Translations under genes and position numbers: made by a program | Origin: Phallusia mammillata | Taxonomy: Eukaryota | Assembly (NCBI GenBank): GCA_965637545.1 | Contig: OZ281496.1 | Coordinates: 27,714,001 to 27,778,000, forward strand | Length of the DNA stretch: 64,000 nt | Direction: 5' to 3' | Part shown: one piece after another, positions 227-52,338 of the stretch | Position numbering within the stretch: position 1 is the first letter of the stretch | Layout: every line of letters starts with the position of its first letter | The notes under the pieces: generated by a model | Database searches by the model: none | Seen by the model: the letters and a program-made list of their open reading frames with translations, nothing else | Told to the model about the DNA's origin: nothing

Positions 227-305
227 CCGCATTCGTTTCAATCTGAGCTGAGACGCAGCTTATCAAGGCCGCACCGAACAAGGCGATGAAAATCATAGAC
301 TTCAT
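227..305 (-). CDS. Gene J, first (signal-peptide) exon; rest of gene lies beyond the left edge
   Basis: ATG at 305 reads [26 protein letters not shown]+G, then donor gtaggc. 79 nt, phase 1, close paralog of the gene I leader exon (7700-7778). Confidence 0.8.
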
Positions 306-1804
306 TACGTTAATTCTGCGGTGTCTACTGATTCTCAGTTTCTATTAGAAATGATTTTAATTAATTTTCGTATAAAGTGGCACTGTTTATTAAAAGAAAC
401 AAAACTGTTGTTTATTCAACTGTAAAGATAGAAGCTCAATTTGGACAGCTAATCCGTGTAAACGTTATAAAGTAAAGCTGCTTATACACTTGATATAATA
501 TGTCACACTTTCAAACTGTGGCTGATGCAAGTTGATTGTTAAATCTTGAGAGGACACAAATGGCAACAGATATGGTTAATAGTGTGAATTGCATGACTTG
601 TTTTCTATTTTAACAAGTAGCGGGACGCCTGTTTTCTTCAATACTATGTTGGCTAACTTATATACATCTCAATTGCTTTATCACTGTTACCATATGTGCT
701 ACATTACTGCTAAGTTAAAATACAACAACACAAACAGTCTGGTATATAGTTTGTATTAAGCATTAGAATGACCTCAACCTGCCTTTTATCAAAGTGTGTG
801 TTTTCGTACCCTTCACGTGTCTATTTATTGGTCGGTTTACAGACAAAGGTTGTTATAAAACAGATTGTCAACCACACAACACCTGCAACTTTCTGTGGTC
901 AATATTGTTTTATTGAATCAAAGCCTGTTTTCGTGAGCTATGTATGAACAAATGGACCCAAACCCCATTTTGTTGAGGTTTGGTCACGCGTGCGTTTCAT
1001 TAACTTCGCACAGAAAACAAACAACATTGGTAACATTGTTTTTCCTAAACGTCATGGACACATATCTCGAATAAATTAAATTTTTAGTCTTTGCAACTCG
1101 AGCTGTTTTTTTTTTAAATTTAAGGATACGAGCATCAGTGTAATTGGCTCTGAATTAGTTTCAAATATTTTCACGTTTGTTGGACCTTCAAATGTATTTG
1201 CTTATCCGAAAATATCGCTAGTAAGACTCCTCTTTGTTCCGTGTTTTGTGTGATTATGCGAAAGCTACCTAACGAAAGCTGTTCGAAAAGTTCTAACACA
1301 TCACCTAATCGTTGTGAGAATTGGCACTTTGTATCACACACCCTATATCGGCCATCAGTGTTTATTGAGAACTCTTCATTAGGAGTTTACATACCTACAG
1401 TTTACTTAGAAAATAAGTTGTAGGCGTTTTGCTGTACAAATGCATGTGAGGGTTAAACCCGATGTTGTACAATGTAAAAACATTAACGAATATGAAAAAC
1501 GCGCAATACAAAATGTTACGTCGAAAAAAACAAAAACAATTTTCTTCATTAACAAATGACAAAAAATACTTTGTTATTCAAGTAAGTTTCTCGTTCAGTA
1601 GTAGTAGTAAAAAAACATGAAGCCAATAGATGATAACCGTGTAGTTTCCAGACAGTGAACACGGTTTCAGCCGTAGGTATAACTTGTTATTTCTAACAAA
1701 CTAGGGTGCTGTTGGGTGACTACGCTACCCAATACGGCCTGTTTCGCGTCACCAGCTGCACTGATGGGACCTTATAGATTCGAAACAGTGTGCATTGTCT
1801 ACAT

Positions 1805-2152
1805 CAGTGGTTCCCAACCTTTCGTGGACCGTGGCCCCCTTAAAGTAACTTTTTGGCCTCGTGGCCCCCTTCAAGTTACCATGTAGGACCTGTGGCCCCC
1901 TTAAAATGTAGATAGCAATCTCGCGTTGGAATGCGGTATAAAATTTTGGCCCTAAACAGGTCTAATAGAGTAAATGAGCATGATAAACCTCACTGCAAAC
2001 AAATAGTATGTAAAATAGTCCATTAAATTCAGGATAAAGTTAAAGTGAAAATGACTTTTAGTGGGTGTTTCTTGTCAATCTACGGCCGTGGCCCCCCAGA
2101 ACACAGCTTGTGGCCCCCCTGGGGGGCCATGGGCCCTGGTTGGGAACCACTG
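1805..2152. mobile_element. hAT-type MITE (348 bp)
   Basis: TIRs cagtggttcccaacc / ggttgggaaccactg and 8-bp TSD gtctacat (1797-1804, 2153-2160). The paralogous site near 9692 is empty. Confidence 0.92.
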
Positions 2153-2250: not shown

Positions 2251-5200
2251 TCAAAAGCCAGGGATAAAAATACTGACAAATCCAAGCGCCATGAGAAGGA
2301 GAATTCCCCCAAACAGTCGCAGTCCGCTTGCATCGTTGGTGGTAGTTGTTGTAGTGGAAGTGGTGGTAGATGTAGTAGTTGTTGAGGCATTACCTTGTAA
2401 ATATTAAACTGACATTAGAATTTGGTTGCAGTGTGTCAATGCGCAAATACCTTAAAATGTGCGCCAGTTAAAAGATTATTGGATAAGATTCCATAAACAA
2501 CATATATCGAGATAAAATGCTGAAATAAGTAGCTTGGAGTATATACTGTTTTAATTAGGACATTGTTTACGAGAAAGATCCTTACCACATGCCATTTGTA
2601 AAAAACAAAAGAAGGACTTGTTTCGCTCTTTCAGTTTTAAGGCATACAATGCATCTAGCATTTGTGGTCATTGATGTTGCTACGTTAATCTTGCTTAGAG
2701 TTAAGATCCTATATGTGCCAATACCAGACATTTTGTGACGATTTTTACCTGTACAAAAAGTTCCGTTTCCAGTGAATCCAGTCATACAGGTGCAAGTGTA
2801 ACTTCCCGCAGTGTTCATGCAATCGGCGTTTGTATGGCAAGTTTCGTCCATATCACACTCGTTGTTGTCTGCAAACAAGTTAAACAGAGGTCAAACTAAC
2901 ATACCATTGAACGGCGTGTATATATTTTTTTAAATAAAGACTTTGCGTTCTGGCGTTGGCAAAAAATGATTTTCAAAACGCATTATCTCACTTATTTTTG
3001 GTTTTTAATGGTCCAATTACTCATTACTTCACTCAAACTGCTACATGCAAAAATAGTCCAGAACCAATCTTATAAGACTGCTATTGTGTAGATACTATAG
3101 TAACGATACGATTGCAGTTTCGTTGCATGCAAAATGCACTCACCGACACAAGATAATGGATTCATGGATAAGTCCATGCTGAAACCACTGTTACAATTAC
3201 AAGCATAAGAACCAACGTTGTTCATACACGTTCCGTTTGTGCCACAATTGTAGCTGCTATCCATGCATTCATCGATATCTGTTGAAAATGCTGAATAAGA
3301 AGTGCGCAAAAATGGTGCGTTTATTATAATTCTCCTTTTTAGCTTGGGTGTATTGTGATTTCCACTTGATTTAACAGACTGGCTGGTCTAAATGTACGTT
3401 TCACGCTTGACCTACTAACAAATACGCTCCGGTTAGTTTAACATATGCTTTTTTATTTATGAGTACATTTTCGTCTTTTTGATAAACACAGCTGTAGTTA
3501 TGCTGAAAATACGCCTTCTAACCCTATTTCTAACGCTATTTCATTACTGTTTATTCTAACATTTTTAAATCGATCGTAGTTATTACTCAATGAGATGACT
3601 TAAAACTCAAAACAAAGTAAATTGTTTAAAGGAAGGAAACTTGGTACCTGAACATGTAAAACCGTCTCCGGCATATCCCGTATTACACGCGCAAGTAAAA
3701 CTCCCACCAGCGTTTGAGCAAGTAGCGTCACTGTGGCAGTTGTTTGTTAAAGCATCGCTGCATTCGTTTACATCTGAAACATGTAGGTTAAAAAACGTTG
3801 GGAGACTTTACACGAAATATTAGCGACAAGAAATAATTCACATTTTTGTTTAGACGTGCAGAACCTCGTTCTCTGCCGAACTTTATTTAACTAGTTGACT
3901 TAAAACAAGGCAAGCATGTAGTTTTTTGTTTGTTTATGTGTTTAACATTACCATCGGAAACGAATATTTAACAGAAAACTCTCTGTTGGCTGGACGAAAC
4001 TCCGTTTATTTATTTGAACATTCAGTAGAACTAAGATATTGTTTATTCGTTTTCAATATACACCTACCTTGACATATGTTTCCCGAATCCATTACGTAGC
4101 CGCTATCACACGTACACGTGTAAGATCCTGGTTGGTTCATGCACTGGACGTTTCCCCCTGTACAGCCAATTGTCATACATTCGTCGATATCTGCGAATAT
4201 GTAACTTCGAAGTTCTGATGTATATGCTAAAGACTTATCCTACGGCAAATTTGGCCTATTGGTGCGACTAGGCTTGTCGATCATTGCTGATACATATGTT
4301 CACATCTGAATTGAGAAACCGTTTGCGGCCTAACAAAAATGCAGTCTTTTGTGCAATACATTGCAGTTAAATGTTTTTGAAGCCCCTAAGAGTAAAATCT
4401 AACATCACATGACAAAATACACAATCAGTGCGAATGCTATGAGAGAAGCAGAATTGATATGTATCCTTCTTAAACAAAATTATATTTTTGACATTATTGC
4501 AAGTACATTAATAGTTTTTCCTGTACAGGTTACTCCGTCTCCATTGAAGCCTGAATTACAAGTTAGGGATAAAATAAAGAGTTCACGTCTTTAATTTGCT
4601 GCAAAATATATGCAGTCTCATGAGTCTCCTTACCAACACATGTTAACGGGTCAATGGCTCCGTTCACTTGGTAACCAGCGTCACAGGTACAAGTATAAGA
4701 ACCGATATTGTCGACGCAAGTTCCGTTCGTTCCGCAATCGTATCCGAAATCCACACATTCATTGGTATCTGTTAACGTGGTTTACCAGAATTTAAATAAA
4801 TTTGAAACACATGTTTTTAAGACAGTAGCCTATTGGAAAAAAAAATGTTTATTGAACGGTGGCTGGAGTCTGCTTGGTTTGATATTTGATTAGATGCAGA
4901 ATCCTCTGCCACTACCTTTTTTGCGCTATAAATGGATCGAATGCATGAGCAATGCTTAACTCTTTTCTCTATTTAGGATACTTACTTGTGCAAATCAGTG
5001 CGGAGTTAAGAACGTAGCCAGAGTTGCAAGTACACTTGACTTAAAATTGTTGTAAAAATACTAAAACGCTTTTTGTACCAGATCGTCACATGCTCACCAA
5101 AACATACACAGTGGCCCTAAACTTTGACAACGACGTAAGAGCCGCATAAAACCTGGCGGAGAGCCGCTGGTTGTCCGCCCCTGGCCGACGCCATATATGA

Positions 5201-7778
5201 TAACGGTTAGTACACTCTCGCTACTCCTGGTTATTCTTAAACTCTTATTTGTGACAAGATTAGCTAAATTTTGACTTGCTGTTAGTTACAACAGTTTGTT
5301 TTTGAATTACAATCTATTTGTAACATTTTTTTGTTTCAAGTCGGCACTTTTAACACCCCCTAAGCTAGTCGTAATGTTTACGGTTACAAAACTAAAATAT
5401 AAAACAAACATTGTGACTACAACTGGGTGTTTTCGTGTTTTTGTGTGATTTGATGTTTTCTCGAATTGCTTAATTTGTTAATACATGACCGAACCGCACC
5501 ATACGTCAAGTGCCTGTTTAATTTTTTTAAGTTTGTTTCAATTTGCACATTCGTTGATTATATTCGGTATATACCATTGCATAAAATACAAGTTGCTTGT
5601 GGCTTTCCTTTGCCACGACATACTTTTGCCATCTAGTTGATTTTACCCGTGCAAGTCATGCCATTGCCCGTGTAGCCAGTGTTGCAAGCGCATGTGAAAC
5701 CCCCAGGTGTGTTGGTGCAAATTGCGTTCATATCACAAGAGTGAGATCCAGCCATGCATTCATCGATGTCTGAATAATTAGAAAACTTGTGGTTGATAGA
5801 TGACAATCGTAAGGCACTGTATTAAATATCGAAATACAGAGAGTTTATCTACAACATTGCCTTTAAAACATTATGAAGCATTGTGTTAACAAATTAAATC
5901 TGGATCGTGCGTTTATCTAAAACGTTTATTGACTGGACATAGATTGTTTGCTTACCAACACATGTCAATGGGTCCATGGTTCCGTTCACTTGGTAACCGG
6001 TGTCACAGGTGCAAGTGTAAGAACCGACGTTGTCAACACAAGTCCCGTTTGGACCACAATCATATCCGAAATCTGTGCACTCATTGAAATCTGTAAAAGT
6101 GGTTTTAAAGAATTGATTCGACAATTGTGTTTTGCACTTGTTGGTTTGTTGAGATGTGCTTGTAAGCGTTATAAACTAGCTATATATCTCAACGTTGGGT
6201 CTACTATTTAGGTTATTATTCATAACTTTTATACGAGTTACCTACCTGGGACGCTGAACGCATGTCTAGTTAAAAAGGTTTGCCAGAAATATCACAAAAT
6301 AATTGTGAAGTGATATTGTAAGAAAACGGCGTTTGTTTTTTGACCTGTGGTTAACAAACATCAACCGATGTAATATGTTCTTGTAAAATGGATACTTTAC
6401 CTGCACAAGTTAGTCCATCACCAGTAACATCTGCATTACAAGCGCAAGTAAAAGATGGGTCAGTGTTGGTGCAGGTAGCGTTTGCGTGACAGTTGTTCAA
6501 TGTGGCGCTCGCACATTCGTTAATGTCTACAATGACAAAGGCCAACAGATCATACTTTGATGATTTATGTAAACAAAAGTGGCAAACGCTCCACTTACCA
6601 ACGCAAACCAGAGCTGAATTAAGTTCGTAATCTGTATTGCAGGTACATGTGTAGGTTCCAGGCATGTTGGTGCATGAAGCAGTTTGCAGGCCGCATTCTG
6701 TACCGTTTCCGCACTCGTCAATATCTGAAAAATATCAATAAGCAATTACATCGCGGTTAATTTTTGTGATTTTTCGTGCTTAGTTTAAATATCCAATCAT
6801 ATTTTTTAGTAGAAAATACGCGTTTCAATTAACTTGTGAAATATTTCTCGTGCTTTTTCAAATTTATTGTAATAAGGTCTACTAGTTATTAAAACCGTTT
6901 AGGTATATTTTCTTCACACGACGTCGTTTTCTTCATAAAAAACGCATTTATCTTACCCGTGCATGTTGTTCCTGATGGTACCAGTGCAGTGGTAAACGTG
7001 GATGTGCTCATGTCGTCATAACCAGAATTACATACGCATTGCAACATTGAGGTGTCAAGATTAGTGCAAGTGGCGTCGCTGGCGCAAGGGTGGAGTGTCG
7101 TAGAGCAAACGTCGGTAACTGTAATAATTTCGTTTTGGATTAATATACATGCCTCAGTAGTAATTACTCCTATCACCTCCTTTCGCGGCAAAAGGTGACT
7201 GGACAATATTTTGTAATTTTTTTTGAATATAGGTTCAGAGTAAAAAATGTTTTGATTTCACTTAAGCAAAAAAAGATACTTACAGTTTTCGGCGTTACCA
7301 CCAGCCCGTATGGCGTCTAGCGCATTCGTGGCGATTGTAGAGTTTACGTAGGCGATAGTTTCAACAGTTTGGGTTATAACGAATCCTCCAAGACCATCCG
7401 GTGTACTTCGTGTTTGGTTGTACACAACGATAACTGTAAAAACTAATTATGGTGAAGTGAATTTAAGCCAACAAAAACACAGCACTTTATTTATTTGTTG
7501 TCTATTTTGGTCGTTTTGTTTAAAACGATAGTATTTTACAGATGCTGATTTGAATTGATTGGAATGTTCAGTTTTGAACAAACGCTCTCAAACTAGTAAT
7601 ATATAACAAAGCATTTTATAACTTAAACCTAAAGGTGTTATTTACATAAAACCGCACTCGCATATAGCAATTGAGAATACAAATGAAAAACATGCTTACC
7701 CGCATCGGTGTCAATCTGAGCTGAGACGCAGCTAATCAAGGCCGCACCGAATAAGGCGATAATAATCTTAGACTTCAT
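2251..7778 (-). CDS. Gene I: predicted GPI-anchored protein with signal peptide, Cys-free N-terminal domain, 10 EGF/cbEGF repeats and Thr-rich stalk (~560 aa)
   Basis: Exons 7700-7778 ([21 protein letters not shown]), 7284-7433, 6957-7118, 6599-6724, 6401-6526, 5956-6090, 5647-5769, 4634-4768, 4068-4190, 3648-3773, 3144-3278, 2749-2868, 2251-2393 (GNASTTTT...[28 protein letters not shown]). All junctions are GT-AG phase 1, total 1683 nt open. D-I-[DN]-E-C cbEGF motifs present. Confidence 0.85.
4521..4563 (-). pseudogene. Relic 3' end of an EGF exon ([14 protein letters not shown]) with dead donor
   Basis: Reads as an EGF C-terminus but the 5' part is missing and the donor position is GA (G|gaaaaa). 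The same relic is at 12057-12099. Confidence 0.7.
4986..5039 (-). other. Half-EGF exon remnant ([18 protein letters not shown]), 54 nt, frame-preserving
   Basis: Matches the 3' half of gene H exon 12482-12610 and keeps donor gtaagt. An acceptor-like ttttaag lies at the breakpoint. Confidence 0.6.
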
Positions 7779-9788: not shown

Positions 9789-12700
9789 TCAAAATCCAGG
9801 GATAAAAATACTGACAAATCCAAGCGCCATGAGAAGGAGAATTCCCCCAAACAGTCGCAGTCCGTTTGCGTCGTTGGTGGTGGTTGTTGTCGTTGTTGTA
9901 GTGGAAGTGGTGGTAGATGTAGTAGTTGTTGAGGCAGTACCTTGTAAATATTAAACTGACATTAGAATTTAGTTGCAGTATGTCAATGCGCAAATACTTT
10001 AATATGTGCGTCAGATAAAAGATAATTAGATGGGATTTCATTATCAACATATATCGAGAAAACATGCTGACATAAGTAGCTTGAAATATACTATGTTTCA
10101 ATTAGGAACATCATTGAGAAGAAATTCTAAACAACACAAGACATTTTTTAAATCAACAACATAAGGACTTATTTCGCTCTTTTATTTTAAGGGCATGCAA
10201 TGCATCTAACATTTGTCATTGATGTTGCTATACATCAACCTTGCTTAGAGACCCTATATGTGCCAAAACCAGGCATATTGTAACCATTTTTACTTGTACA
10301 AAAAGTTCCATTTCCAGTGAATCCAGTCATACAGGTGCAAGTGTAGCTTCCCGGAGTGTTCATACAATCGGCGTTTGTGTGGCAAGTTCCGTCTATATCA
10401 CACTCGTTGTTGTCTATAAAAAATGCAAAATAAGCGTTAAACTAACATACCATTGAACGGCATGTATATTTTTTAAAAGTAAAGACTTTGCGTTCTGGCG
10501 TTGGCAAAAATGATCTTCAAATCGCATTATTTCAACTATTACCGGTTATAAATGGCCCAAATATTCAATAATTCCATCACAACTACTACATGCAGAAGCA
10601 ACACAGAATCAGTAAGGCTACGATTGCAGTTTTTTTGTCGTCCTATTAAAAAATTTGCTCACCGACACAAGATAATGGGTTCATGGATAAGTCCACGCTG
10701 TAACCGCTGTCACAATTACAAACATAAGAACCAACGTTGTTCATACACGTTCCGTTGGTGCCACAATTGTAGCTGCTATCCATGCATTCATCGATATCTG
10801 TGAAAAACATTGTATCAGAAGTGCGTTCATTATTTATAGTCTGTTAGTTGATAATTTCTCTTTTCTAGACTGGGTGTATTGTGATTTCCTCTTGATTTAA
10901 TGTGCTGGCTGGTCTAAGTCTACGTTTTACGCTTGACCTACTAACAAATACGCTCCAGCACTTCCTTTATTTATGAGTACATTTTCGTCTTTTTGAGAAA
11001 CGCAGCTGTAGCTTTTGCTGGAGATACGCCTTCTAACGCTATTTCATTTCTGTTTATTCCAATATTTTAAAGTGGATTGTAGTTATTACTCAATGAGAGG
11101 ACGTAAAAGTCCATAAAAAGTAAAAAAAAGTTCAAAGGAAGGCAATTTGATACCTGAACATGTAAAACCATCTCCGGCATATCCCGTATTACACGCGCAA
11201 GTAAAACTTCCACCAGTGTTTGTGCAAGTAGCGTCACTGTGGCAGTTGTTTGTAGAAGCATCGCTGCATTCGTTTACATCTGAAACATGTAGGTAAAAAC
11301 GTTGCGAGATTTTATCTTCCATTTCAAAATATTAGCGACAAGAAATAATGCACATTTTTGTTCAGACGTGCAGAACCTCGTTCTCTGCCGAGCTTTGTAT
11401 AACTAGTTGATTTAAAACAAGCCAAGCTTGTTGTTTTTTGTTTGTTTATGTGTTTAACATTACCATTGGAAACGAATATTTCTCTCGGTTGACTGGACGA
11501 AACTCCGTTTATTTATTTGAATATTCAGTGTAACTAAGATATTGTTTATTAGTTCTCAATGTACACCTACCTTGGCATATGTTTGCCGAATCCATTACGT
11601 AGCCTCTATCACACGTACACGTGTAAGATCCTGGTTGGTTCGTGCATTGGACGTTTCCCCCTGTACAGCCAATTGTCATACATTCGTCGATATCTGTGAA
11701 TATGTAACTTCGAAGTTCTGATGTATGCTAAAGACTTGTGATACGGCAAATTTGGCCCATTGTGCGACTAAGCTTGTCGGTCATTTATAAATATGTTTAC
11801 ATCTGAATCTGAAATGAAAAAATCTGAAATGAGAAACCGCTTGCGGTCTGTTGAGTAACAAAAATGCAGTCTTTTGTGTAATACAATGCAGTTAAACGGT
11901 GACAAGTTTTTGAAGCCCCTAAGAGTAAAATCTAACATGACAAAATACACTATCAATGCGACTGTCATGAGAGAAGCAAAATTGATATGTATCCTTCTGA
12001 AACAAAACAAAATTATATTTTTGACATTATTGCAAGTAAACCATTAGTAGTTTTTCCTGTACAGGTTACTCCGTCTCCATTGAAGCCTGAATTACAAGTT
12101 AGGGATAAAATAAAGAGTTTACGACTTTAATTTGCTGCAGAATAAATACAGTCTCCTTACCAATACATGTTAACGGGTCCATGGTTCCGTTCATTTCGTA
12201 ACCGGTGTCACAGCTGCAAGTGTAAGAACCGATGTTGTCGACGCAAATCCCGTTTGTCCCGCAATCATATCCGAAATTCACACATTCATCGATATCTGTT
12301 GTATAATTTGAATAGATTTGAAACACATGTTTTTAATCAGTAGCCTATTGGAAAAAAATATTTGTAGAATTGTGGCTGAAGTCTGCTTGGTTTGATATTT
12401 GATTAGATGTAGAACCCCCTGCAACTACCCTTTTTGCCCCTTTAATGGATCAAATAACTCGTCTCTTTTTAGGATTCTTACTTGTGCAAATCAGTGCGGA
12501 GTTTAGAACGTAGCCAGAGTTGCAAGTACACGTGTAAGTTCCAGGATTGTTGTCACATGAAGCGGTTTGTGCACCGCAAATTGTGGAGTTTCCAGCGCAT
12601 TCGTCAATATCTGAGATGTATGTGATGTTAGATAGCATTTCCATGCAACATTAACGTTAAAGCCAATCAGAAAAAAAGTAGTTAAATGTCTGCCCGCTTA

Positions 12701-15161: not shown

Positions 15162-15794
15162 GTTTTTCTCTTTTGTGTAGCTTTTGAAACCACCGTGACC
15201 AAACTTTACGATTAGTTTTCAATATAGACGTACCTATGCGAAACTGCCTAAATTTTAAAGCAAAATCCGCCGTAGTTACAAAACAAAACAACCGGCTTTA
15301 TTGTTACAATGCCTTTTTAGAGTTGTTTCTAAATAAAAACGTTCAGCTGAACTTTGCCTTACACTGTACGGTTTTGAGGTTTTATTAAAACGAAAGCTCG
15401 AAAAACAAAAAATTCTACTGCCACAAGTACTCTTTTCTCACTGTTATTTCGTCCTTGTTAACCAGCACCTTACAATCTCGGCCATAAATTTCAAACAAGC
15501 ACATTTAACAACGTTGTACAACCTATTCGTGCTAATACTATGATCATAAGACATTGGTACCCACATCCAAATGGGGATAGGCGTTGTTCATTTTACACTA
15601 TTACGTCACATTGATGCTCGGTCGCGCGTAACCCATGATGGCTGCGCCCTAAAATGATTCAAAACATTGATTCGTACAAGTGTCGTAATACGGAAAACCT
15701 ATGTCGAGCACAAAACTAGAGGCTTTGATTTTCGGAAATTGTGGGGTTGGGAAGGGGTTTACCGCTTAGAATCAACAAAGCAGTTTTCACTGGT

Positions 15795-15928
15795 TATGTA
15801 CGGGAGTTATATAGGTAGAAAATGCTTTTTGTTTGGGAAACAAAACACGAAACTGGTCTTTTATGTACGGGAGTTATATAGGTAGAAAATGCTTTTTGTT
15901 TGGGAAACAAAACACGAAACTGGTCTTT
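15795..15928. repeat. 67-bp direct tandem duplication (also 21660-21793; single copy near 25460)
   Basis: tatgtacgggagttatataggtagaaaatg...gaaactggtcttt occurs twice in tandem. Confidence 0.9.
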
Positions 15929-16638: not shown

Positions 16639-16654
16639 CAGTGGTTCTCAAACT
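16639..16654. mobile_element. Solo hAT-like terminal repeat (also 22507-22522)
   Basis: cagtggttctcaaact matches the other hAT TIRs in the window. No partner TIR or TSD found. Confidence 0.35.
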
Positions 16655-37400: not shown

Positions 37401-40396
37401 TAGTCCGCTTATGCCATGACTGCTTTTCGATGTTGTGTTAATCTCATTTCTATATCGACACCTAGACTTTAAAGCTTGTTGGCAGGTCGGCAGCATTCAG
37501 CTGCTGTTGATTATGCTTGCTACAGAATTAAATACTTGTGTGACTTTGCACTGTACGTATATGTGGCGTACAATGTTACGATTACACGGACCTTTAGAAT
37601 GCTGTACATTTTAACTAATGTGTTTTGAACAAATTTTATCACACATGGTATAGATCAAATACTTAACCCATCAAAAGTGATCAGTAAATCTCGAACCTTG
37701 GGCGGTCACTTAAATGTAACAAATTTAACTTGGTATTTTGGCCACATAGCTTTCTTACCAATACACAGGCTGTTGTCAATGAGCATATAACCGTCATCAC
37801 AAGTGCAGTTGTAAGTTCCCGGCAAGTTGTTGCATTGTGAAGTAAATTCTCCGCAAATGGTGCTGTTCCCTTGGCACTCGTCAATATCTACAACCAACAG
37901 GGTTAGATTGGGTTTTTGAGTTACTTTTTTTTGTGTGGTTCTGTTTGTTTTGAGTTTTATCCGTTTTCGTCAATATCTACCACCAACAGAGGGTTGGCTT
38001 GTGTCAGTAGGTTTGGCTCTTTGGTAAAATACGTTGGTTTTGACTTGACTTGGTTTGTGTTTTTGGTGCCAAAACAAAACTCTGGTTCTGGTATTGTGTA
38101 ATTTGTTTCGGAAAATTGCTGTGTGATCTCTTTATGTGCAAATGCTTGTTTTTCAGGAATTCATATGTCATTTTTGTGACTTTTACCTGTTTTTTTGGCT
38201 TTGATCAAAGACTTGCAGTTAGCACTGGATTGTAACAATTAAACATGAATATAATATTTTCTTGTTTTCGCTTTGAATGTGTACAGTAATGCCCGAAAAT
38301 ATATACATCAAAATTGCAAAACGCATCACCCATCAAAGATATTTACTTTTGTAAACAAAAACCTTCACGAAATTAAATCGGTTTTCCTATTAAATTGTTC
38401 AGTGAAAGCCGGTTTGATCAACTATATTAACGTAACGGAAACGCGTAAGCGCAAAACGCCGTGTTTGTCTGAAAACAAATCGCACGTCAATCCATTGTGT
38501 TGGTTTCAATGATTAAAACTTTCTTGTTTTTTTTACCCCATGATGACTTTATTTCTCACGTTGCTCGGTTTTATTCATCAGTTAAACTTTTGCGCCGGAA
38601 ACAGAGACACCATGAATAATTTCATTTAAATACGAAATCGCGATGATTCAGTACCATAATCGCAACTGGTTTTATGTTATGAGTTGTCATTGTTACGAAC
38701 TGATGCTGTTTTTTGCTAACCGATTGGTCATACAATCAAACAAATGCTAGTTTACAGTTAAAAAATTACCCGGATAGAACACTGTTGTACGTTGGAAAGT
38801 AAGTTTTTAAAATTGGTTTTGCGGCCTCTAAAGGGTACACACAAACATGATCGCCTTATAATTGCTAAAACTACATGAAAATGACGATTACACAATACTT
38901 AATACCGTTCTTAACTCCAAAGTGCCTTGATTTTCAGTTTTTAAATGTTTTTTTGGTTAGTTCGGTAACGCATTGTATGCAACCCAGAGAAGCGAATATT
39001 TTTCGTATGTCTTCCTCGCATTCTTCTGCATTGTCGTTTTAAGGTATTTTAAAGTATTATCTTCTAAAGGCCAAACAAACGTATGTTTCTGGCGCAAAAT
39101 TAGTGGTGAACGTATGAAATTTTTTAACATACAAAATTCGGTATAGCACACCCCGAAACCGTAATTGGCTAATTTCGTTGTGACTTGTACGACTTTTTAT
39201 ATGTTTAAACAGGGTATCATGCATCCCCAAGCATTAGCATTATTTCGTTGTCTCATTGATAACTTTGTTGTACCTTCGCATTGAGTTTCAGTTCCGTCAA
39301 CAAGAATAGGCTCCAGAGCTCCGTCCAACAGCGTGTAGTTTTGTCGAAAGCCGTCGCCGCATGCGCATGTAATCAGATATGTGTCTAACACATTACATGT
39401 AGCTCCATCCCCACAAGGGTTGACTGCGTTGCTGCAAGGGAACGGCACTGTTGACAACAACAAATATTATGTTAAGGCGCATGATTGTGTTATTTCCATG
39501 TGAAACAGAAGCTACATTTGTAAGAAGTTTAAAATGAATTTATAAAAACAAAACCACATATAGCTTGTTTTTACCAACTATCAAATCTAATTCAGCCTTT
39601 GTTAAGAAAACAATTGGTAATCATCCGGGCCAAGTATGATACACAAAGTCTAAAATGTTTGCGTCATATATAAGCTCCCTGGCAGTTTAGGTTTTAATCA
39701 AGAGACTTTGATGTGTAAGTTTCCCTTTCATATGTCGTTTTCCAAATATTAACCACAAACTGGTGTATTTTTGAAGAAGAGTACCTTCAGGTAACATGGC
39801 AACGATTTCAGTTTTACTTCCTACCTGCAGTCGAAGCGACAAAACTTGCGATCAGGGTTTCTGCTTCGGCCCGAGTATTGAAAGCGAAGTATTGGACATG
39901 GTTTTGTTCTGTAATCAATGTACGCAGAGCGATATCTGCAACATAATTTTAAAACAACGGTTATTGAAGCTAGTATTGGGTGTAAAACATAACAACGTTT
40001 CGACAGTTTCTTTTGTCATTGTTTGGTAAAATAAAACCAAAGAAAAAAAGAAAGGGTCGATGCGAAGTTAAAGTTAATAGCAATTAAGCCGAGATAAAAC
40101 ACAAGGGGGTTATTTCAGTTGGCGATTACAAAAGAATTAATGTTTATGTAAGACTGCTGCATTACGAAATGCATTTAGGACAGAAATTGTACTCTCTAAC
40201 ACTTTGTGGGCCTACGTTTTGTCGTCCAATTTACCCCACTTCATTGGAGTGATTAAGATTCAATGTTTGAAACATAACACATTAAAATTTTGACTATTTT
40301 GTTAAACTTACAAAGTGTTCCAGTTGTGCTTTGATTTCCATTACTAACTCTGAATGTTCCTGCTAATATAGCGATAAGAAAACAAACGGCCTTCAT
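34445..40396 (-). CDS. Gene C: predicted GPI-anchored 7-EGF protein (~407 aa)
   Basis: Exons 40312-40396 ([20 protein letters not shown]...), 39825-39935, 39274-39447, 37759-37887, 37159-37275, 36708-36830, 36085-36201, 35170-35289, 34786-34908, 34445-34569 ([41 protein letters not shown]). All phase 1, 1224 nt open. Confidence 0.85.
35329..35865. mobile_element. hAT-type MITE (537 bp) in a gene C intron
   Basis: TIRs caggggtgggcaac / gttgcccgcccctg, TSD atttaggc (35321-35328, 35866-35873). Sits 40 nt from the acceptor at 35289. Confidence 0.92.
36438..36609. mobile_element. hAT-type MITE (172 bp) in a gene C intron
   Basis: TIRs cagtggtgggcaacc / ggttgccgaccccta, TSD cattagac/cattatac (one mismatch). 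Confidence 0.78.
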
Positions 40397-41573: not shown

Positions 41574-44500
41574 CTATAAGGCAAATATAGGCGCCACAAT
41601 AATTAAACAAAGGAAAATGATTCTATAACTAGCGTAAACAATTGAGGTCGATCCAGGTTTTCCTGTGGTTGTTGTTGCTGTACCCGAAGGATTGCCACTT
41701 TGAGCTGCAGAGTTGCCAGTTCCACTCGAACCTGCTGATCCACTACTGCCACTTGCGGCGCTAGAACCACTGCTGCCACTTGATCCTATTGTGCCGTTTA
41801 GGTTGCCCGGCGCGGACTTACATAACGGCGCTATGGCTGTGAAAAGTTAAATTATACTATTAATTGTGTCCAGGTTGTTTTGTTCAAAACATGTAAGTTA
41901 TATGAATGTTCATCTGCCTCAAGTATTCAAATAACAGTACATCCTTTTTTAACCCGTAGTTTTAATCATGCGTGTTAATAGAAGTCCACACAACGGTTAT
42001 GTTTATGTTGTTAAAACTACCCTTGATATTATCTGCAGTTTGCAAGTTTTATGCGTTATAGGTTTGTTCACAACATTAAAATATCGTGTCAGTAACACTA
42101 CAATCTGGAAGCAAACAAGCGACGTTGAATTTAATTTGAACCGAAAAACATCAGTTTGCAAAGTGTTGTTTTCAAGACGTCTAGGAGGTGCATGTGTAAA
42201 ATGGTTGGTCTTTAATAATGCATTGGTAAGTGTGATATTGTTAGACTTTGTCATCAAACAAACGACTTAAAACCGATACACATCCATTTTGCAGCGCGTT
42301 TGCTGAAAGACTTACTTGAATATTAGGCTGTACAAACACATTGATAAGGTTTGTGCTTACCCGTACACCACGTCCCGTTGCCTGCGTAACCCGGGTATAT
42401 GCATTGACACGAATAGCTTCCTATGTGGTTAGTGCATATGGCGTCCTTGTGGCATTTGTTCTGTCCGTTCGTACATTCGTTCACATCTAAATCAATCATT
42501 TTCACAGATTAAGTTTTACGAAAATTCGATTTTAGATGAGGCTTAGAAAGGATGGGCTTATTCCTCTGTACCTTTACAAAGTGGTCCTTGATAGGCAAAG
42601 CCCTTTTCGCAGTCGCATCTGAAACTGCCTTGTGTGTTGACACAAACTGCTCGTCTTGTGCACGTGCCCGCCAGTGTTGAACATTCGTTAATGTCTGAAC
42701 AAAGAAAAAATATAAGGTTTGACGTAGGTACACAAATACACTTGATATTTATAAGTTACCAGCTGTTATTGTTTCTTATTCTTGTCACACTACATTTTTC
42801 AGTCCTCCAACAAACCCAATATTACTAAATAACTAGGCAAAATGCATTTAGGGTTCACAAATATTGGTACATGTGCAAAGCTGTGTATAAACTTTTACAC
42901 GCATTAAGTATTCGTGCAAAAATCGTTTCGAGATTTACTTGCGATCACGAAGGTCGATCGCTTGTTCTTATAAAATGTAGCCAAGTCAAGATACACAACC
43001 AAGAAAATTGTGATTGATTTTAAGTTCCAGGATGTTATTACTTGGTAATATTTTACCGTTCCTTTGCTACAAAAACAAAATATAGTAATGTTGTTGGTAT
43101 ACAGAGTTTTTACAACACAGACAATGGTGATTGATATTAACATCCAGGATGTTGTTAGCTTGTAACCTTTAGGACCGTTTCTTTGCTACAAGAAACATAA
43201 CATAGTAGCCTACCGTAGATGGTACAGAATTGTAAGTCGGGCCGGGCTTTTTGTGCCGGGGTTGGTCATGTGTTTGAATACAGGTTTGTATCGGTCCTGG
43301 CACTCAGCCTCATTTGTGTCGCAATTTTCATCTTTTAGGCCTAACTTTTAGGCCGGGTTTAGACAGGGTTTAAGTATCTAAGTACCTGTACACGTTCTTC
43401 CATCACCGCTGTATCCCGTATTGCAGTTGCATATGTAAGTGCCAATGCTGTTGGCGCAGGTGGCATGCGCAGAACATTTGTCAGTTTTCTTAACGCATTC
43501 GTTGATGTCTGTAGGTCAACATGTTAAATAGTGAAACAGAATTAAAGTTGTTTTGGGGCAGAATTATATCACACGGCCTTGTTGCGCAGATATCTGTCTT
43601 AAAATACAAAATAAGTGCGATAAAAACGTCAAGTTTCAATCATAACTACATGATTAAAGTACGTGGCTTAATGAAAAAGTAATGTTCCCATTTGGCAGAA
43701 TCACTTTAACTTAAATTGACCACCTCGTGTTTTTGAGGGTCCGAAATGCAGCAAAATTCATAAAAAATATCTTACCTGTACAGTGAGTTCCGTTTCCACT
43801 AAAACCAACATTACAAGAACATTTGTAACTTCCAATCGTATTTGAACACGTGGCGTGTGCACTGCACTTGTGTGTTCCCGCTCTACATTCGTTTATGTCT
43901 AAGGCAGAAAAAGCAGAATAATATACATAACTATGTACTGAGTACCAACTTCGTTAAGGCGCCGTCGTATTCAGCACTACTTCGTCAAACATACCCAGTG
44001 TTTCCTTTTAATTTTAGTTTTTTTTAGCAATCAAACAGTCAAACGTAGCAATCAAACTTTGAAGTTTTCGTTAAATACAAAAGTTCAATTAGGAAATATC
44101 CATGTGGGAATGCGATCTATGTATCAGGTGACGCCAATTGCCTGTTTGTGCCAATTTGGAGTTTTTTTTTCACCGTTTTGATTACCTGAACAGTTGCTCC
44201 CAGTTCCTTTGAATCCTGTGTTGCAAACGCACTGGTAATTCCCGGTTAAGTTTAGGCACGACGAGTTTGCGTGGCAGTTCTTGTAGTAACAAGGGTCGTA
44301 CTCTAAAAAAAATATCACCACTTTTCTGAAACACCTGCGTTGGTAAACTTGTATCGACTTAAACGCTTATGCTCAAGTGTGTTTGGCTCTGAAGTCTGTT
44401 AATCAACAGTATCCGTAGTTGGTCTAATGACAACAGTTACTTATTTATTCTACATCATAAACTTACTGATACACTTCTTTGGAGGAACCAGCATATACCC

Positions 44501-46658
44501 CTTCTTGCATGTGCAGTTGTATGTGCCAGGATAATTGTTGCATTTTAGTGTGTGAATTCCACAGATTGTGGTGTTTCCAATACACTCGTCGATGTCTGTG
44601 AAAGTTGCAGTTGTTTTACACATTGGTAGTTAGAAACGCGTCAAGTAAAATCAAAACATGACTTTTGCATAGCCCGTAAACATATAAAGCCAGTTCAATC
44701 GTAGGCGTTGAGGTACGCTGTAGTAATTTGTCACTGGCGAGAATTTTACAACTATGATCCTTGACGCTTTTCACAATGCATTTCTTACCTACGCATGCAG
44801 TTTTAGTCTTATGTATCATCACAGGTTCATTGATGCCCTTGATTAACTGGTAGGTTTGATTGTATCCTGGACTACACGAGCACTTCACTTCATACCCGCT
44901 GATATTGGAACATTTTGCGCCACCACCGCAGGGTGAACTTGCTGTGCTGCAGGGCTTAGGGACTGTAATGACAGAAAAATTAGATTAAATCATCAAAGCT
45001 AAGCTCGTTACGATGTTGACTAGGAATAGTATGGGGTCGTGACCGCAACTACATCCACGCTTGGGAGGTGCGTTAATGATATTTTCGTTGGTGTTGGTAG
45101 TACATTGGATTTAAAAGATTGCTCAAAGTTGGTTTGGGTATTGTCATACTTTTTGCTGGTGAATATGTCTTGCCAAAAAAGGTTTAATTTGTCACTTGTT
45201 CGTCAAAACTTTTTAGAATGCAGTTGGCCACTTACTTTGTACGTCAATTTTGGCCCAAATATTCATTACATTAAGTTGCTTCTTTTCTCAGCAAACGAAA
45301 TATTGTGCCAATCTTTGAGATGCTATGATCATCGGTGATATACCACTCTGAACCCCAAAAAACCCCAAGACTGCCCAATGCTGCATGTTTTAGCATAAAA
45401 TCTTTTGTTTTCTGCAAACGTTTATACCGCTTTAGTAGATTTAATTATTACTGAGAAATGCGCTTGTCAGTTTTCACGAAAAAAGATTTAAATATTTTGC
45501 TAATATTATGGAGTATTGAGGTACCTACGTTTGAGTTTTTGTCGGTGGATGCCTTTTGCCAAATAATTTGTAATTGCTGCATAAATACCAGGAAAGTGAA
45601 AGTAACGTGTTGGTTTTTAGGGCGACATTTCGTTTACTGGGTCTGGATTTCTTAAAACGTGTGGCACACACTGTGTCACATATGTCCATGATAATTTTGG
45701 AAATATCACAAAGTGTTTGAAGCAGTCCAGGAAGTCCTGTTTAATAATTTCCTCTTATTGTTGTAGAGTTTAAAAGAAACTCCTCGCCGTTTAATCATGC
45801 TTTTCTAACTCGGTTACAAAGCGTTTACCCCACCAGCCGTGTACTCATATTACATTTTTCGTGCTGGAAACCAGGCAACGATTAATTACGTTTTGTGCCG
45901 ACACCTTCGACCTACTGTACGTTTTTATGTTACATTACATACGACTGGTTTTTTAGTTTATGTATATTGCGGTAACTTGTTCTGGTAACAGGTTCAGCTC
46001 ACTGAAAAGTTACTGTAAAAAGAAATTATGACTAAATTTGTCCCCCAAAATATCGCATTCTTTGATATTCAAAGTACGACAAGAACGATAAAGTCACGAA
46101 ACACGTGTAACAACCTCTGGAATCTTATATGCCGCTGCATTATCCGTCAAAAACAATAAATTGCAAACATCACTTACTTGGAATTGAGGCAACAAGCTTG
46201 TTCTTAATTGCTGCGGCATCCGTAAAGTTATGGAAGGGGTAGTACTGAATATGGTTTGGATTTGTGATCAGTGTTTGCAATGCAATGTCTAAATACACGG
46301 CATATTGATTACTCTAGTAACACAGTGGTAAACTTAATCCCCAAACTTTGGATCGATTCTAAGTGCTGTTAGCATTACTGCTTAGGTAAAAATGTTAGTT
46401 TGAATGCTACAACAGCAGTTGTTAAGACTTTAAATTGTACATACACTTTAAAATCATTTCCTGACACGAAACGGTGCAACTAATTCTTAAATGATGAAGC
46501 TTATAAGGTACATATGTATCACAAACTGCTGTTGCAGTCTATAACTTTTCAACACCTTCTATCTAAGACTTACACACGTCTTGGATAATTGCTTGGGTAG
46601 CAGAAATCCTTGCTTTGGATAAAAAAGCTACCGCAAACAGAACAGTGACCACCTTCAT
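41574..46658 (-). CDS. Gene B: predicted GPI-anchored 7-EGF protein with Ser/Gly-rich stalk (~457 aa)
   Basis: Exons 46574-46658 ([28 protein letters not shown]), 46178-46288, 44789-44962, 44467-44595, 44186-44302, 43776-43898, 43386-43508, 42572-42694, 42361-42486, 41574-41836 ([26 protein letters not shown]...[25 protein letters not shown]). 1374 nt open. Confidence 0.87.
43003..43205. repeat. Degenerate ~117-bp tandem duplication in a gene B intron
   Basis: ccaggatgtt...ctttgctaca occurs near 43027 and again near 43144, each preceded by a gtgattgat motif. Confidence 0.55.
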
Positions 46659-48240: not shown

Positions 48241-51200
48241 TTAATTTTTCGCGCACGTTTCTGAAACAAATACAATTTTCTCGATTAGAAATTGCGTTTT
48301 TTGTACTTCCAGTGCTTCAAAGATACGTAAAACTATTGCTGGTAAGAACAGATATGTTTTTTGTTGTTGAATAAATAAATAAAAAAGTCGGGTAATTTTT
48401 GCAAGCCTTACTGTATGCTGTCGTTCATTGCTTTGTCTATATTTTGAAACCATATCTTTTAAGCTACAAATCATGGGATAGATTTCTTACGTTTGCACCA
48501 AGTTCCATTTCCAACGAAGCCAGGATATTTACACATACAGGAGTAGCTTCCAATGTGGTTAGTGCACGTAGCCTCTTTATGACACTTGCCCTGTCCGTTC
48601 AGACACTCGTCCACATCTGCACAAATTGTTTGTTTGCGATTAAAACAAAACGGCATTTTATGCCTTACGACATTAATTTGGTTACACAAAATCACGCCTT
48701 TAATAGGCCTGGCGTACTATGAATTACACAAAATGGTTCTAAATAAGCAAGTTGATACAATGCAATGGCTGCTTGAGTTCATTTACCCCATGTTGACATG
48801 TGAAACCGTAGAGACGTTGAATATTAATTGCTTGCTGAGAATATTAGCTAATTGTTTGACCGTGGCAAGAGTTATTTCGCGAAACATTTATTGTTTGCTA
48901 CCGCAATTTGGGGACTACAATCACTATAATTGTACTTTGTTCTAAAGTGCAATGGTGCTGAATAGATAATGCAAGGATATTTAACAGGTATCTTTCCTTG
49001 TTTTTCATTCATTTTTGACCCGAAAGTTTTAAAATATTCATACCTTTGCAAAGTTTTCCTTGGTATGCGAATCCAGGTTGGCACTTGCACTCATAACTTC
49101 CCGGTGTGTTAACGCAATTGGCGTACAAAGTGCAGTTCCCGTTGCCAGGCAGCAGGCATTCGTTGATATCTGTGAATTACAGCAATACATCTTGTTTTTT
49201 CTGGCATTTATCTTCGCGTAATTGATGCATTTAATTGTATTCGCACTTATATACTTGTGTTGCTCTGAAAGGATTTGGAGGTCCTATAACTAAAAGTTGT
49301 ACTTTGTGCATACAAATTGTGCGAGTTAACTTACGTGTAAGTGAATAATTATGCACAAGATAATTTAGCCCCCTTCAATACACTTTAAAATATTCCAGAG
49401 CAAAAATACTCTATTAAAACAAATGATATGTCGTCACAAATCTTCCAAAAGTACATCAGCTTTTCTTGTTGTGGTTGTTGTTTTTATCAACATAATGCGA
49501 TTGCTGCGTCAGGGGAGTTCATGCTTGTAACGAGTTACTGCCGTTTCCTATGTTTTACTGACGTAAACTTCCTTGACCCGTGCCGATTTTTCGCTTTTGC
49601 AAACAACGCTGTAATGACAAGCGGAATTTCTCAGCATGAACTATTACATAATGGACGTATTCTTTACCTGACTTCGGGATTTTGTACCCTGTGTTTATTC
49701 TCAGTAACATCCTGTTTACGGAAATTTTTCGTTTATACAATTCTGCACATGTGTCACGAACAAAAGCGACAAGTATTAGTTGTAAACAACGTAATATTAA
49801 GACTACGTCAGTCGCATTTAGCAGCGTTGTGGGGTCTTTAGTCAGTCAACACGACGTTTTTCTTGAACTAACTTTGATTGGGCGGTTTTGTGCAACAGTT
49901 TTCGTCACATAAGATTCAACTACCAGTAGCATAAATAATACTCATGCTTTTGATTTTTACTTAAGACCAAGTTTTCGTAACAAAACAACACTTTTCTGGA
50001 GTAATAAGCTGTGTTCAGTTCTCATGTTGACAATATATGTGTGCTAAAGATCTAATCTCTTACCTGTGCAGACCTGTCCGTTTCCAGTGTATCCTGGTAA
50101 GCATGTGCAAGTGTGACCCCCAAACGTATTCGCACAAACTGCGTTCTTGGAGCAATTGTTGGTTTTTAGTGCACATTCGTCCACGTCTAGAAAAATATTC
50201 GAAATACTTTCTGTTTAAATGGTAGCCCTTTGAGCGAATAAGTTGAGAAAACAATTTGATTCGATATTATCAAGCAATGTGTAATAATTGTAAAATAACC
50301 ACCGGCAAAGAACTATTGTACACTATCTATGATTCGTTTGATATTCACTACTGTAATTTGTAGTTGATCGATTGAGCAAAACTTACAATTTGACGTATGG
50401 CATTCTACAGTTCAGTAGTTTTTGATGCAGTTAGTTCTGCCCCCAGATAAATGGAGGGAAAAGTAAATCTTACCGGAACAGTTTCGTCCGTCTCCGAAGT
50501 ATCCTGGTTTACATTTGCATGTGTAGCTTCCCACCGTATTGGCACAAGTGGCGTTTGAGTGACAAGTCGCAGTTCCCTTCGTACATTCGTTTATGTCTGT
50601 GAACGCAATGCGAAACGTAAAGCTTTCCGCAAGCAATATTGCCAGATTACTTTTAAAATCGTTGTCGAAAAACCGAAAAATCAGGGGTTTGAACTGGTTA
50701 AGTTTAGCTCAAGAATCATTTGCTACAGACGATTACACAAATCTCTTGGTAAAGCTATTTCTGTGTTAAAATATATTGTAAATGCAAACTGCATTGCTAA
50801 CTTATGCTCTTAAGACTAAGTTTGTCAAGTGTGTGCTGTTGCATTCTATACTGATTTTGAACGACATTTACCTGTGCAATAGGACCCGTTGCCACTAAAA
50901 CCTGTGTTGCAAACGCATTGAAAGTTTCCACTAGCATTCGAACAAGACGAGTTGGCGTGGCAGTTCATGTAGTAGCATGGATCGTATTCTGTTGAAATAT
51001 TTAGTACCTTAATCAGTGGCCATCATTGTGTTTAATTGCTTACCCATTCGAAAGACAATTATTCTGCAAAATGTATACTGAAGGCAGGCTTCGAGCATGC
51101 ACTATGTAATTTTAATCAAAGCCATACAATATTCATGCTATCTCCGTTTAAGTTTGAAAGTGAAACGTGTTGTCGTTGGGAAGGTTTGTGGCCGTAATGT

Positions 51201-52338
51201 GGTTTACTTACTGATACATTTCTTAGGAGGAACCAGCATATATCCATTTTTGCACGTGCAGTTGTATGTGCCAGGATAGTTATTGCATTTCAACGTATGA
51301 ATTCCACAGATTGTGCTGTTTCCAATACATTCGTCCACATCTAATAAAATAAATTTAGGTAAAATTGGAAAAAATGGAACCATTAACATTTATTTGCGAG
51401 GTTCGAAACGAAAGCATTGTAGTGTAAAACTTAATGGTATTTGGAAACCAAGATAAGATTATCACTATACAATCTCTGCCAACTTTAAAGGCCTTTGGTG
51501 ATGTTGCTTATATATTGGTGGAATAATATAACTAACAGCTTGTTCTCCAAGTTAACGTCCACTGTAAGCTACTGGTTAGACAAAGTCTTATACCTTGACA
51601 TGCCGTTTTCGTGCCAACTACCATCACTGGTGTTGTGATGCCTTTGATCAGTTGAAAGGTTTGATTGTATCCTGGACTGCACGTGCATTTCACCTCGTAC
51701 CCGCTGATATTTGTGCATTTTGCCCCGACGCCACAAGGTGAATTGGTAGCACTGCATGGCTGTGTTACTGTAAAACAATACAGCAGCTTTGTGTTTGATA
51801 AACATCCGTATCAACACTGCCTGTTTATTCCTAAAATACTGCGTTTACCACACCCACACTATATAATCTACTAGTGTATTTGTGTCGTAAAACTGTTAAG
51901 ACAACATACCAGTTGTTACAAAGTAAATCATGTGGCTAACTTTTACACATTGTCTGGTACCTGGAATGGTAGCCACGAATGCTTTTCTGACGTTAGCTGC
52001 TCCTGTTTGTGTGTAGAAGGGGTAATACTGTATGTGACTTGGATTAGTAATCAAGGTCTCCAGTGATATATCTACAAAGGACAATCTAATTAACGTATCG
52101 TTCTCTTGGTTATTTACACTCTTTACCGAAAGTTATGTGATTAATGTTAATTTAGCTATGCGCAAATGTAGACATTACAACATTTATCGAAACCAGTCAG
52201 ATACTTATAGTAATAACTATTGCAGCATTTCAGGATTTTGCCAAGATACTTACAAGAATCTTGATAAATGCTTGAGACCGCTTCATTTTCTCCCACCATG
52301 CAAACTGCTATAGTTAATACCAGTACAAAACTATTCAT
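48241..52338 (-). CDS. Gene A: 7-EGF paralog of B and C, probably secreted (no GPI tail found; ~377 aa)
   Basis: Exons 52254-52338 (MNSFVLVLTIAVCMVGENEAVSSIYQDS), 51961-52071, 51594-51767, 51212-51340, 50872-50988, 50474-50596, 50064-50186, 49044-49169, 48491-48616. Sizes of the first seven exons match gene B. The best terminal exon is 48241-48260 (tttgtttcag|QTCAKN*) and is less certain. Confidence 0.8.

Follow-up and report, generated by a model that had tools for sequence, protein, structure and literature searches.

The window, a 64,000-nt stretch of Phallusia mammillata contig OZ281496.1, harbors ten gene units on its minus strand (G1 to G10; Table 1), extending from the ATG of G1 at position 52338 to the leader donor of G10 at position 227. 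An EGF-exon pattern (AG, an open frame, six Cys, GT; alternative donors tallied separately) matched the minus strand 70 times, 65 of them in phase 1, and yielded no match on the plus strand or in five shuffles. The curated models comprise 54 EGF exons, of which 7 are atypical first EGFs and 47 others, along with 10 leader exons, a further 2 relic leaders, 7 tip exons devoid of Cys and 7 last exons of the GPI type. Five genes, encoding 176–560 aa, are intact; one further unit has a probable secreted end, three are damaged and one leaves the window. Frames were checked by joining exons computationally, and homology searches were run exon by exon. The scans bear out a preliminary description, which had counted at least ten same-strand units in 52 kb. 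It had also derived all units from one cassette kit; however, G5 and G6 are a separate gene type within the cluster, built from a phase-2 leader, two non-calcium EGFs and, where the tip would be, a short exon encoding a basic site (RRRSPR), the G1 and G4 models contain no GPI exon, and only the leader of G10 falls within the window. A last exon resembling that of G2/G3 was searched for behind G1 and not found; given a putative 20-nt last exon, the G1 product is probably a 377-aa secreted protein.

Table 1 Coordinates of gene units and other features in the window.
Feature	Position	Strand	Exons and remarks
G1	48241..52338	minus	leader 52338-52254, tip 52071-51961, atypical EGF 51767-51594
G1 stalk	51340 to 48491	minus	six EGF exons
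G1 candidate last exon	48260-48241	minus	20 nt; predicted, no RNA support
G2	41574..46658	minus	intact, 457 aa; leader 46658-46574, tip 46288-46178
G2 remainder		minus	atypical EGF 44962-44789, six EGFs, Ser/Gly spacer and GPI-type signal 41836-41574
G3	34445..40396	minus	intact, 407 aa; leader 40396-40312, tip 39935-39825
G3 remainder		minus	atypical EGF 39447-39274, six EGFs, GPI-type exon 34569-34445
G4	28905..33044	minus	damaged; leader 33044-32966, tip 32202-32053, atypical EGF 31857-31696
G4 relic leader	at 32284	minus	deleted
G4 stalk		minus	seven EGFs; 31259-31135 with 1-nt deletion; last EGF truncated, ends at stop
G5	26441..28051	minus	probable pseudogene, copy of G6; exon 2 lacks 19 nt, EGF1 lacks its first Cys, acceptor eroded
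Orphan leader exon	24741..24813	minus	peptide identical to G7/G8 leader
G6	22846..24300	minus	intact, 176 aa; phase-2 leader, basic-site exon 23834-23764
G6 remainder		minus	two non-calcium EGFs, GPI-type exon 22946-22846
G7	16978..21026	minus	damaged chimera; G8-type leader, tip (GC donor), atypical EGF, EGF1
G7 remainder		minus	two broken EGFs, then copy of G6 GPI exon
Insertion, 1234 nt	17611..18848		flanked by two TTAA sites, CCCTT ends; splits second stalk EGF exon of G7
2.6-kb block	14458..17105		near-identical to 20331-22973, 21 mismatches in 2611
G8	9789..15161	minus	intact, 517 aa; leader 15161-15089, tip 14854-14717 (GC donor)
G8 remainder		minus	atypical EGF 14151-13987, eight EGFs, Thr-rich spacer and GPI-type signal 9940-9789
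G8 relic half-exon	at 12086
G9	2251..7778	minus	intact chimera, 560 aa; leader 7778-7700, tip 7433-7284, atypical EGF 7118-6957
G10 leader exon	227..305	minus	90% like G9 leader; gene runs past window

Main-type proteins consist, in this order, of a signal peptide, a Cys-free tip of 36–49 aa, an atypical EGF whose last loop is long, an EGF stalk and a GPI signal. The stalk is made up of 6–9 modules, mostly calcium-binding, and there are 9–12 N-glycosylation sites. Among the 53 in-frame EGF exons, 38 open with the calcium consensus, 40 bear the hydroxylation consensus and 26 have O-fucose consensus sites; the one exon tested against Pfam scored above the cut-off for EGF_CA (3.7e-11). These motifs place the stalks among calcium-binding EGF array proteins. 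The last exons of seven units end hydrophobically (15-residue Kyte-Doolittle mean 1.9–3.2) with no basic tail, and GPI anchoring of these units is predicted from small residues, a spacer and a hydrophobic tail with no cytoplasmic part. The models contain neither Ig or sushi domains nor transmembrane receptors with signalling tails; ZP and D8C exons were absent from the exon scans, and the five complete frames pass from EGF directly to the GPI exon, although a ZP exon deep in a long intron may, with low probability, have escaped recognition.

As the preliminary description had noted, nearly all junctions are in phase 1: phase 1-1 borders and a length divisible by 3 characterise 60 of 61 tip/EGF exons (the sole exception being due to the 1-nt deletion in G4), and 8 of 10 leader exons end in phase 1. 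The genes qualify as class 1-1 modular EGF proteins with one module per exon. The chimeras, deletions and relics reported earlier were likewise recovered: G7 and G9, the orphan leader, the relic leader of G4, the 19-nt deletion in G5 and the half-exon in G8. G5 together with the orphan leader, G7 and G9 can all be traced to three tandem duplications, whose breakpoints are readable directly in the sequence; the duplication that left the orphan leader ends just behind this exon. The 5′ half of G9 (leader to EGF1–4) is of G4/G10 type and its 3′ half (EGF5–9 and the GPI-type exon at 2393-2251) of G8 type, the halves meeting near 5040; in the exon tree, EGF1, 2, 3 and 4 group with G4 and EGF5–9 with G8. 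Chimeras stay in frame because their exons are symmetric, and skipping the broken exons would give computed frames of 201 aa for G7 (both exons) and 393 aa for G4. Each duplication is thus legible base by base, and each product is an in-frame or rescuable chimera. The cluster is a compact, recent example of class 1-1 EGF exon shuffling: symmetric phase-1 exons, recombination in introns and in-frame gain or loss of modules are the features described for this process (PMC3927616), with no difference in principle. Old conserved members, recent duplicates and pseudogenes occur together (dS values range from 0 to saturation, and three units are damaged), and this age mix appears to fit a birth-and-death multigene family.

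Part of the turnover would be spurious if G7 and the 2.6-kb block, which contains a G6-type GPI exon, intergenic DNA and a G7/G8 leader and tip, represented two haplotypes joined in tandem by the assembly. The block copies differ by 0.8%, close to what separates individuals (about 1.1%, from a word share of 0.70), but identity drops to 86–91% in the 1.5 kb that adjoins the block within this duplication, G7 has its own 1.2-kb insertion (putatively piggyBac-like) and a junction with a few shared bases, and the window is free of N gaps. The G8/G9 and G5/G6 pairs lie 7–18% apart. Such an artefact is very unlikely and could remove at most one unit. Still less credence is due to a single splicing unit, with transcripts crossing gene boundaries (G1 into G2; the orphan leader into G6) and thereby mixing tips, stalks and anchors. 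Phase symmetry would put almost any join in frame, and neither G1 nor G4 has its own GPI exon; yet such frame compatibility is general to class 1-1 exons, each unit has its own leader, most have a stop codon followed by a poly(A) signal, and no RNA joint was seen, the RNA contigs covering no exon. The separate leaders, stop codons and poly(A) signals argue for a multi-gene cluster over one long gene, as originally proposed.

Selection was assessed per exon by comparing paralogues. Nearly all aligned exon pairs showed dN/dS values of 0.04–0.4, a mark of purifying selection, and codon maximum likelihood (ML) gave 0.06–0.38 (p<0.001 against 1) for every exon class except the type II tip, carried by the G4–G10 turnover group. 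At 0.60, not different from 1, this tip is the fastest-changing module, and the two exons behind it in the group score 0.38 and 0.25; no exon class showed significant positive selection. In G1–G3, synonymous sites are largely saturated and dN/dS is 0.06–0.12, with the type I tips strongly conserved (0.06). The label "rapidly diversifying" given to the cluster therefore suits only G4–G10, where it describes turnover. Its companion claim, that recombination generates a repertoire differing in tip, stalk length and anchoring, stands insofar as intron recombination yielded in-frame chimeras and both stalk length and anchoring vary; tips, however, were not swapped independently, since tip, first EGF and next EGF show the same groupings.

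That the cluster recognizes self, mates or microbes may be put forward as a hypothesis. In its general form, a diversified repertoire (for microbes, blood-cell contact or gamete species) would have type II tips selected to differ and haplotypes differing in gene content. The elevated rate of this tip relative to the two following exons points in that direction, as does the G4–G9 tip pair, with a dN/dS of 1.45 and a nonsynonymous share exceeding that of the stalk (p=0.03). But no ratio significantly exceeds 1, the p-value is one of many comparisons, and the G4 rate may reflect decay because this gene is frameshifted. Two other samples, which hold 67–70% of the G2/G3-region words, have the 3′ half of G8 and the G8–G9 spacer either missing or ~6% divergent; this hints at haplotype or gene-content differences around G8–G9, although holes in contig data are no proof of absence. 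In another individual, by contrast, the G9 tip is identical over 585 nt, and the G7 and G8 tips are 2 bases apart while their stalks differ more, the reverse of what an allele-discriminating tip predicts. The conserved type I tips, the lack of a cytoplasmic signalling part and the self-fertility of P. mammillata (PMC9265791) likewise speak against such a repertoire, which we consider fairly unlikely. More doubtful still is a version in which the G4–G10 half forms a copy-number-variable repertoire telling cells or microbes apart in a solitary ascidian; there, an orphan tip on cbEGF stalks of adjustable length would be recombined between haplotypes, perhaps with splicing across units. To our knowledge, blood-cell self/non-self reactions of solitary ascidians have no known gene, and should selection prove to lie behind both the differing haplotypes and the faster change of the type II tip, the cluster would become a candidate recognition locus in such an animal, a status of which the present evidence falls short.

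We hold it moderately probable, partly by analogy, that the locus is a lineage-specific birth-and-death cluster encoding GPI-anchored, calcium-binding EGF surface glycoproteins with a coat or adhesion role. Calcium, which is known to stiffen cbEGF arrays of the fibrillin and Notch type, would turn the stalk into a rod holding the tip off the membrane. The proteins might make up a glycosylated layer, serving as a coat or for adhesion, and bind a fixed partner, and the variety in stalk length would largely be a by-product of duplication mechanics. Two observations count against this reading: the fast type II tip, and two RNA-type runs of unspecified tissue, in which no contig covered any G8/G9 exon. 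Run X9 was rejected as a sign of expression at 33.5–43.4 kb, its word share of 5% falling short of the 7–11% predicted for either G2-3′ or G3 and lying close to the 2–3% of other runs. The interpretation offered earlier is supported in part, and the observation beneath it is confirmed.

Uromodulin and GP2 are GPI-anchored glycoproteins with calcium-binding EGFs near the N-terminus, resembling the predicted products in both respects; they are defined by polymerising D8C and ZP domains, which the exon inventory here lacks, and their anchor serves as a temporary tether. With a similar tether, the proteins of the cluster could be shed or secreted matrix components (of mucus, tunic or an egg-coat layer), released as rods and cross-linked. 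G1 and G4 have no anchor, G1 and G2 each seem to retain one Cys to spare close to the C-terminus (mature G2 has 43), and the ascidian secreted EGF-repeat proteins Hemps and Ci-meta1 work outside cells (PMC3760835). No ZP exon was recognised in any window gene, however, and no conserved cleavage site was seen above the anchor, making this scenario clearly unlikely. Hemps and Ci-meta1 share with the cluster an ascidian, lineage-restricted make-up of mostly EGF and cbEGF repeats; they are metamorphosis-linked, with no GPI signal or tandem cluster described there (PMC3760835). The egg-coat proteins HrVC70/HrVC120 and CiVC57 are also ascidian and combine a signal peptide with long EGF arrays and O-fucose consensus sites, but have a ZP domain where a GPI-type end is found here; they are expressed in the gonad, and HrVC70 is polymorphic between individuals (PMC9265791). 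The sea urchin 63-kD sperm flagellar membrane protein matches in signal peptide, EGF repeats, GPI anchor (PI-PLC-proven), length (~470 aa) and location on a marine deuterostome cell surface; unlike the clustered genes with their 7–10 EGF stalks and unrelated tip, it is apparently single-copy with two separate EGF repeats, and the two were compared at the EGF level only (PMC2119707). The Botryllus fuhc locus (fuhc-sec, fester, FcoR) is another tunicate cluster of surface or secreted proteins, and fuhc-sec has two EGF domains; none of the Ig and sushi domains, ITIM/hemITAM-tailed transmembrane receptors or hundreds of alleles of that locus (PMC12065747) was seen here, where two other DNA samples bear on allelic variation.

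The family, so far undescribed, combines ordinary parts with a small tip module for which no relative was detected. Searches of Pfam, PDB sequences and the ESM Atlas gave nothing credible for the tip, a word-indexed search with tip and first-EGF profiles, limited to proteins of similar length, was blank, and literature searches found no ascidian GPI-EGF gene cluster, in agreement with the earlier view that the family has no name. Fourteen weak matches of the tip profile among 1.84 billion representatives, from apparently unrelated and mostly Cys-free proteins, were rejected as summed short repeats. A tip model (pLDDT 70, 7 sequences) comprises a hairpin, predicted to be a beta-hairpin, plus a helix; it had no Foldseek match at E<=0.001, and its resemblance to the end of a PH domain (best VIA Z 4.6) was rejected as evidence, the arrangement being common. 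A search with a two-EGF open frame retrieved generic EGF matches; the three loci examined are giant cbEGF arrays with no homology to the tip, the first-EGF loop or the GPI exon, and are therefore not orthologues; the searches retrieved no orthologous locus of another species. Arrays of 123-nt phase-1 cbEGF exons are also present in unrelated contigs.

The minus strand of the window holds a real and previously undescribed gene cluster, built of standard parts together with a small orphan tip. Six-frame translation confined EGF patterns to this strand, between 2.7 and 51.8 kb, and scanning for open frames bounded by AG and GT resolved them into single-module exons of 111-174 nt. The EGF-exon pattern matched 70 times on the minus strand (65 in phase 1), with no match on the plus strand and none in five shuffles. 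Sequence reading and the placing of leaders and last exons yielded ten gene units (G1-G10, numbered from 52338 down to 227), G10 being represented within the window by its leader only. Eight of ten leaders end in phase 1, and 60 of the 61 tip and EGF exons are symmetric (phase 1-1). This bears out the preliminary description, which had reported at least ten same-strand units with chimeras, deletions and relics, and junctions nearly all in phase 1. Complete frames were obtained for G2 (457 aa), G3 (407 aa), G6 (176 aa), G8 (517 aa) and G9 (560 aa). The frame of G1 stays open across seven EGFs; no GPI exon was found for it, and judging from a candidate terminal exon its product would end at 377 aa and be secreted. 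Three units are damaged. G4 has lost 1 nt and is truncated at its end, a 19-nt deletion affects G5, and G7 carries one insertion and one deletion.

Coordinates of individual features in the window
Position	Feature	Observation
62551-64000	146-bp tandem repeat	~9 copies, 93% match; continues past window end
52930-62555	Diverged repeat units adjoining the cluster	~1.6-1.8 kb, 65-80% alike; strand-biased composition, apparently non-coding
48260	Candidate 20-nt exon	Putative end of G1
27391-27393	Candidate weak second acceptor, 2 nt downstream	Would compensate the G5 frameshift if used
24813	Orphan leader	
22846-24300	G6	
14717, 20559	Tip exons of G8 and G7, respectively	Apparently GC donors, not GT (G4/G9 tips: GT)
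17611-18848	1234-nt insertion between TTAA sites, CCCTT ends	Inside a G7 EGF exon; apparently non-coding; presumably piggyBac-like
12086, 4550	Relic half-EGF exon without GT donor	Kept in G8 as well as G9
9640-9702	Short repeat	Very high copy number
7943-8368	Short repeat	Very high copy number; 17-nt terminal inverted repeats, MITE-like
5040-5240	Short repeat	Very high copy number; at G9 chimera junction

Products of the main-type genes start with a signal peptide, followed by a Cys-free tip and an atypical first EGF; full-length units add a further 6-9 EGFs. Tips are of two types, 36 aa in type I (G1-G3) and 45-49 aa in type II (G4, G7-G9), which align weakly with each other (14-17% identity); the first EGF, with its long last loop, can be aligned in all seven main-type genes. 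Among 53 in-frame EGF exons, 38 start with a calcium-binding consensus; a hydroxylation consensus is present in 40 and an O-fucose site in 26. Each intact main-type protein has 9-12 N-glycosylation sites. Seven last exons combine small residues, a short spacer and a terminal hydrophobic run with no charged tail, a sequence pattern consistent with GPI signals. The single cassette kit originally proposed thus describes the main-type genes, but not G5 and G6, which belong to a different gene type. In G6 a phase-2 leader precedes a 23-aa exon containing RRRSPR, which a furin-type protease may cut; two non-calcium EGFs follow, and the end is GPI-type. The gene appears as a small gene of its own kind inside the cluster, with a possible propeptide bearing the basic site and two atypical EGFs, the first of which had no match in Pfam.

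Duplication and recombination within the cluster diversified these genes, in line with the unequal recombination proposed earlier: three duplications, visible when the window is compared with itself, account for G5 and an orphan leader, G7, and G9. The first, from G6 to just beyond the next leader, left G5 and the orphan leader. The second, spanning the last G6 intron to mid-G8, produced G7, in which a G8-type 5' part is joined to a copy of the G6 GPI exon via a few shared bases. The third, of ~7.5 kb, produced G9, whose leader is 90% like that of G10 and whose first four stalk EGFs group with G4 and last five with G8 in an exon tree (support mostly strong), the junction lying at a half-deleted exon adjoining a high-copy repeat. 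Tip, first EGF and next EGF gave identical groupings, and therefore recombination swapped 5' for 3' halves rather than tips alone. For EGF modules, in-frame products from class 1-1 exons, i.e. exons in phase 1 at both ends, are established (PMC3927616), and the chimeric products here remain in frame because their exons are of this class. The G7/G8 duplicate contains a 2.6-kb block with just 21 mismatches, adjoining 1.5 kb that are 86-91% identical. A false duplication is the less likely source of this pair; the step in identity fits recent conversion or crossing-over between divergent alleles.

The cluster genes are, or recently were, functional. Pairwise dN/dS was 0.04-0.4 in nearly every tip, EGF and stalk comparison, synonymous sites being largely saturated among G1-G3. 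Codon models gave 0.06, 0.12 and 0.07 for tip, first EGF and next EGF of type I, and 0.60, 0.38 and 0.25 for those of type II, where the tip alone was indistinguishable from 1 (p = 0.09). The G4-G9 tip pair, which includes the damaged G4, reached 1.45, not significantly above 1, and exceeded its stalk at an uncorrected p = 0.03. Neither pairwise nor codon-model dN/dS of tip and EGF exons showed positive selection. Runs of two further samples shared 67-70% of the sequence words in 33.5-43.4 kb. Over 4440-10430, we compared contigs of these samples and of two RNA-type runs, the latter touching repeats only. One animal (S3) nearly exactly matched the 5' half of G9, with no difference across a 585-nt stretch that takes in the tip; at the last exon of G8 its contig differed at 15 of 268 bases (9 of the 12 listed differences being G9-type) and its spacer contig at 14 of 235. 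The other (S4) had no contig at 92% likeness across most unique parts of the G8 3' end, the spacer and the G9 3' end, although such contig holes are no proof of absence. These comparisons give hints of divergent or structurally different haplotypes around G8-G9. Together with the faster evolution of the type II tip, they are the positive evidence for a selected recognition repertoire, but nothing else speaks for it and we consider it unlikely; a surface coat or adhesion is, by a modest preference, the probable role.

No description of this architecture was found in the literature, and the cluster stays outside any named family, as first noted. By analogy, the nearest counterparts in mode of action would be GPI-anchored EGF surface glycoproteins, among them uromodulin and the sea urchin 63-kD sperm protein (PMC2119707); no ZP or D8C domain was found in the genes of the window. 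Membership of the HrVC70/CiVC57 egg-coat family was rejected, as exon scans of the window revealed no ZP, and so was membership of the Botryllus fuhc system (PMC12065747), given the lack of Ig, transmembrane and signalling parts in the gene models. Phallusia mammillata is listed as self-fertile in a review (PMC9265791), and self-fertility would lessen the case for a self/non-self role in gametes. Searches of Pfam, 1.84 billion representatives, a word-indexed database, the ESM Atlas and the PDB brought up no credible relative for the tip, blanks that carry little weight because the queries were single exons. Modelled, the tip forms a hairpin plus helix, an arrangement whose structural matches were all commonplace. 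The sole loci retrieved, three on animal contigs (L001-L003; ENA ERZ25066847, ERZ25066843) with 27-43 near-identical 123-nt phase-1 cbEGF exons per 20 kb, were rejected as relatives, having nothing in common with the cluster beyond EGF. Since giant arrays of this kind exist in unrelated loci, phase-1 cbEGF exon arrays are ordinary.
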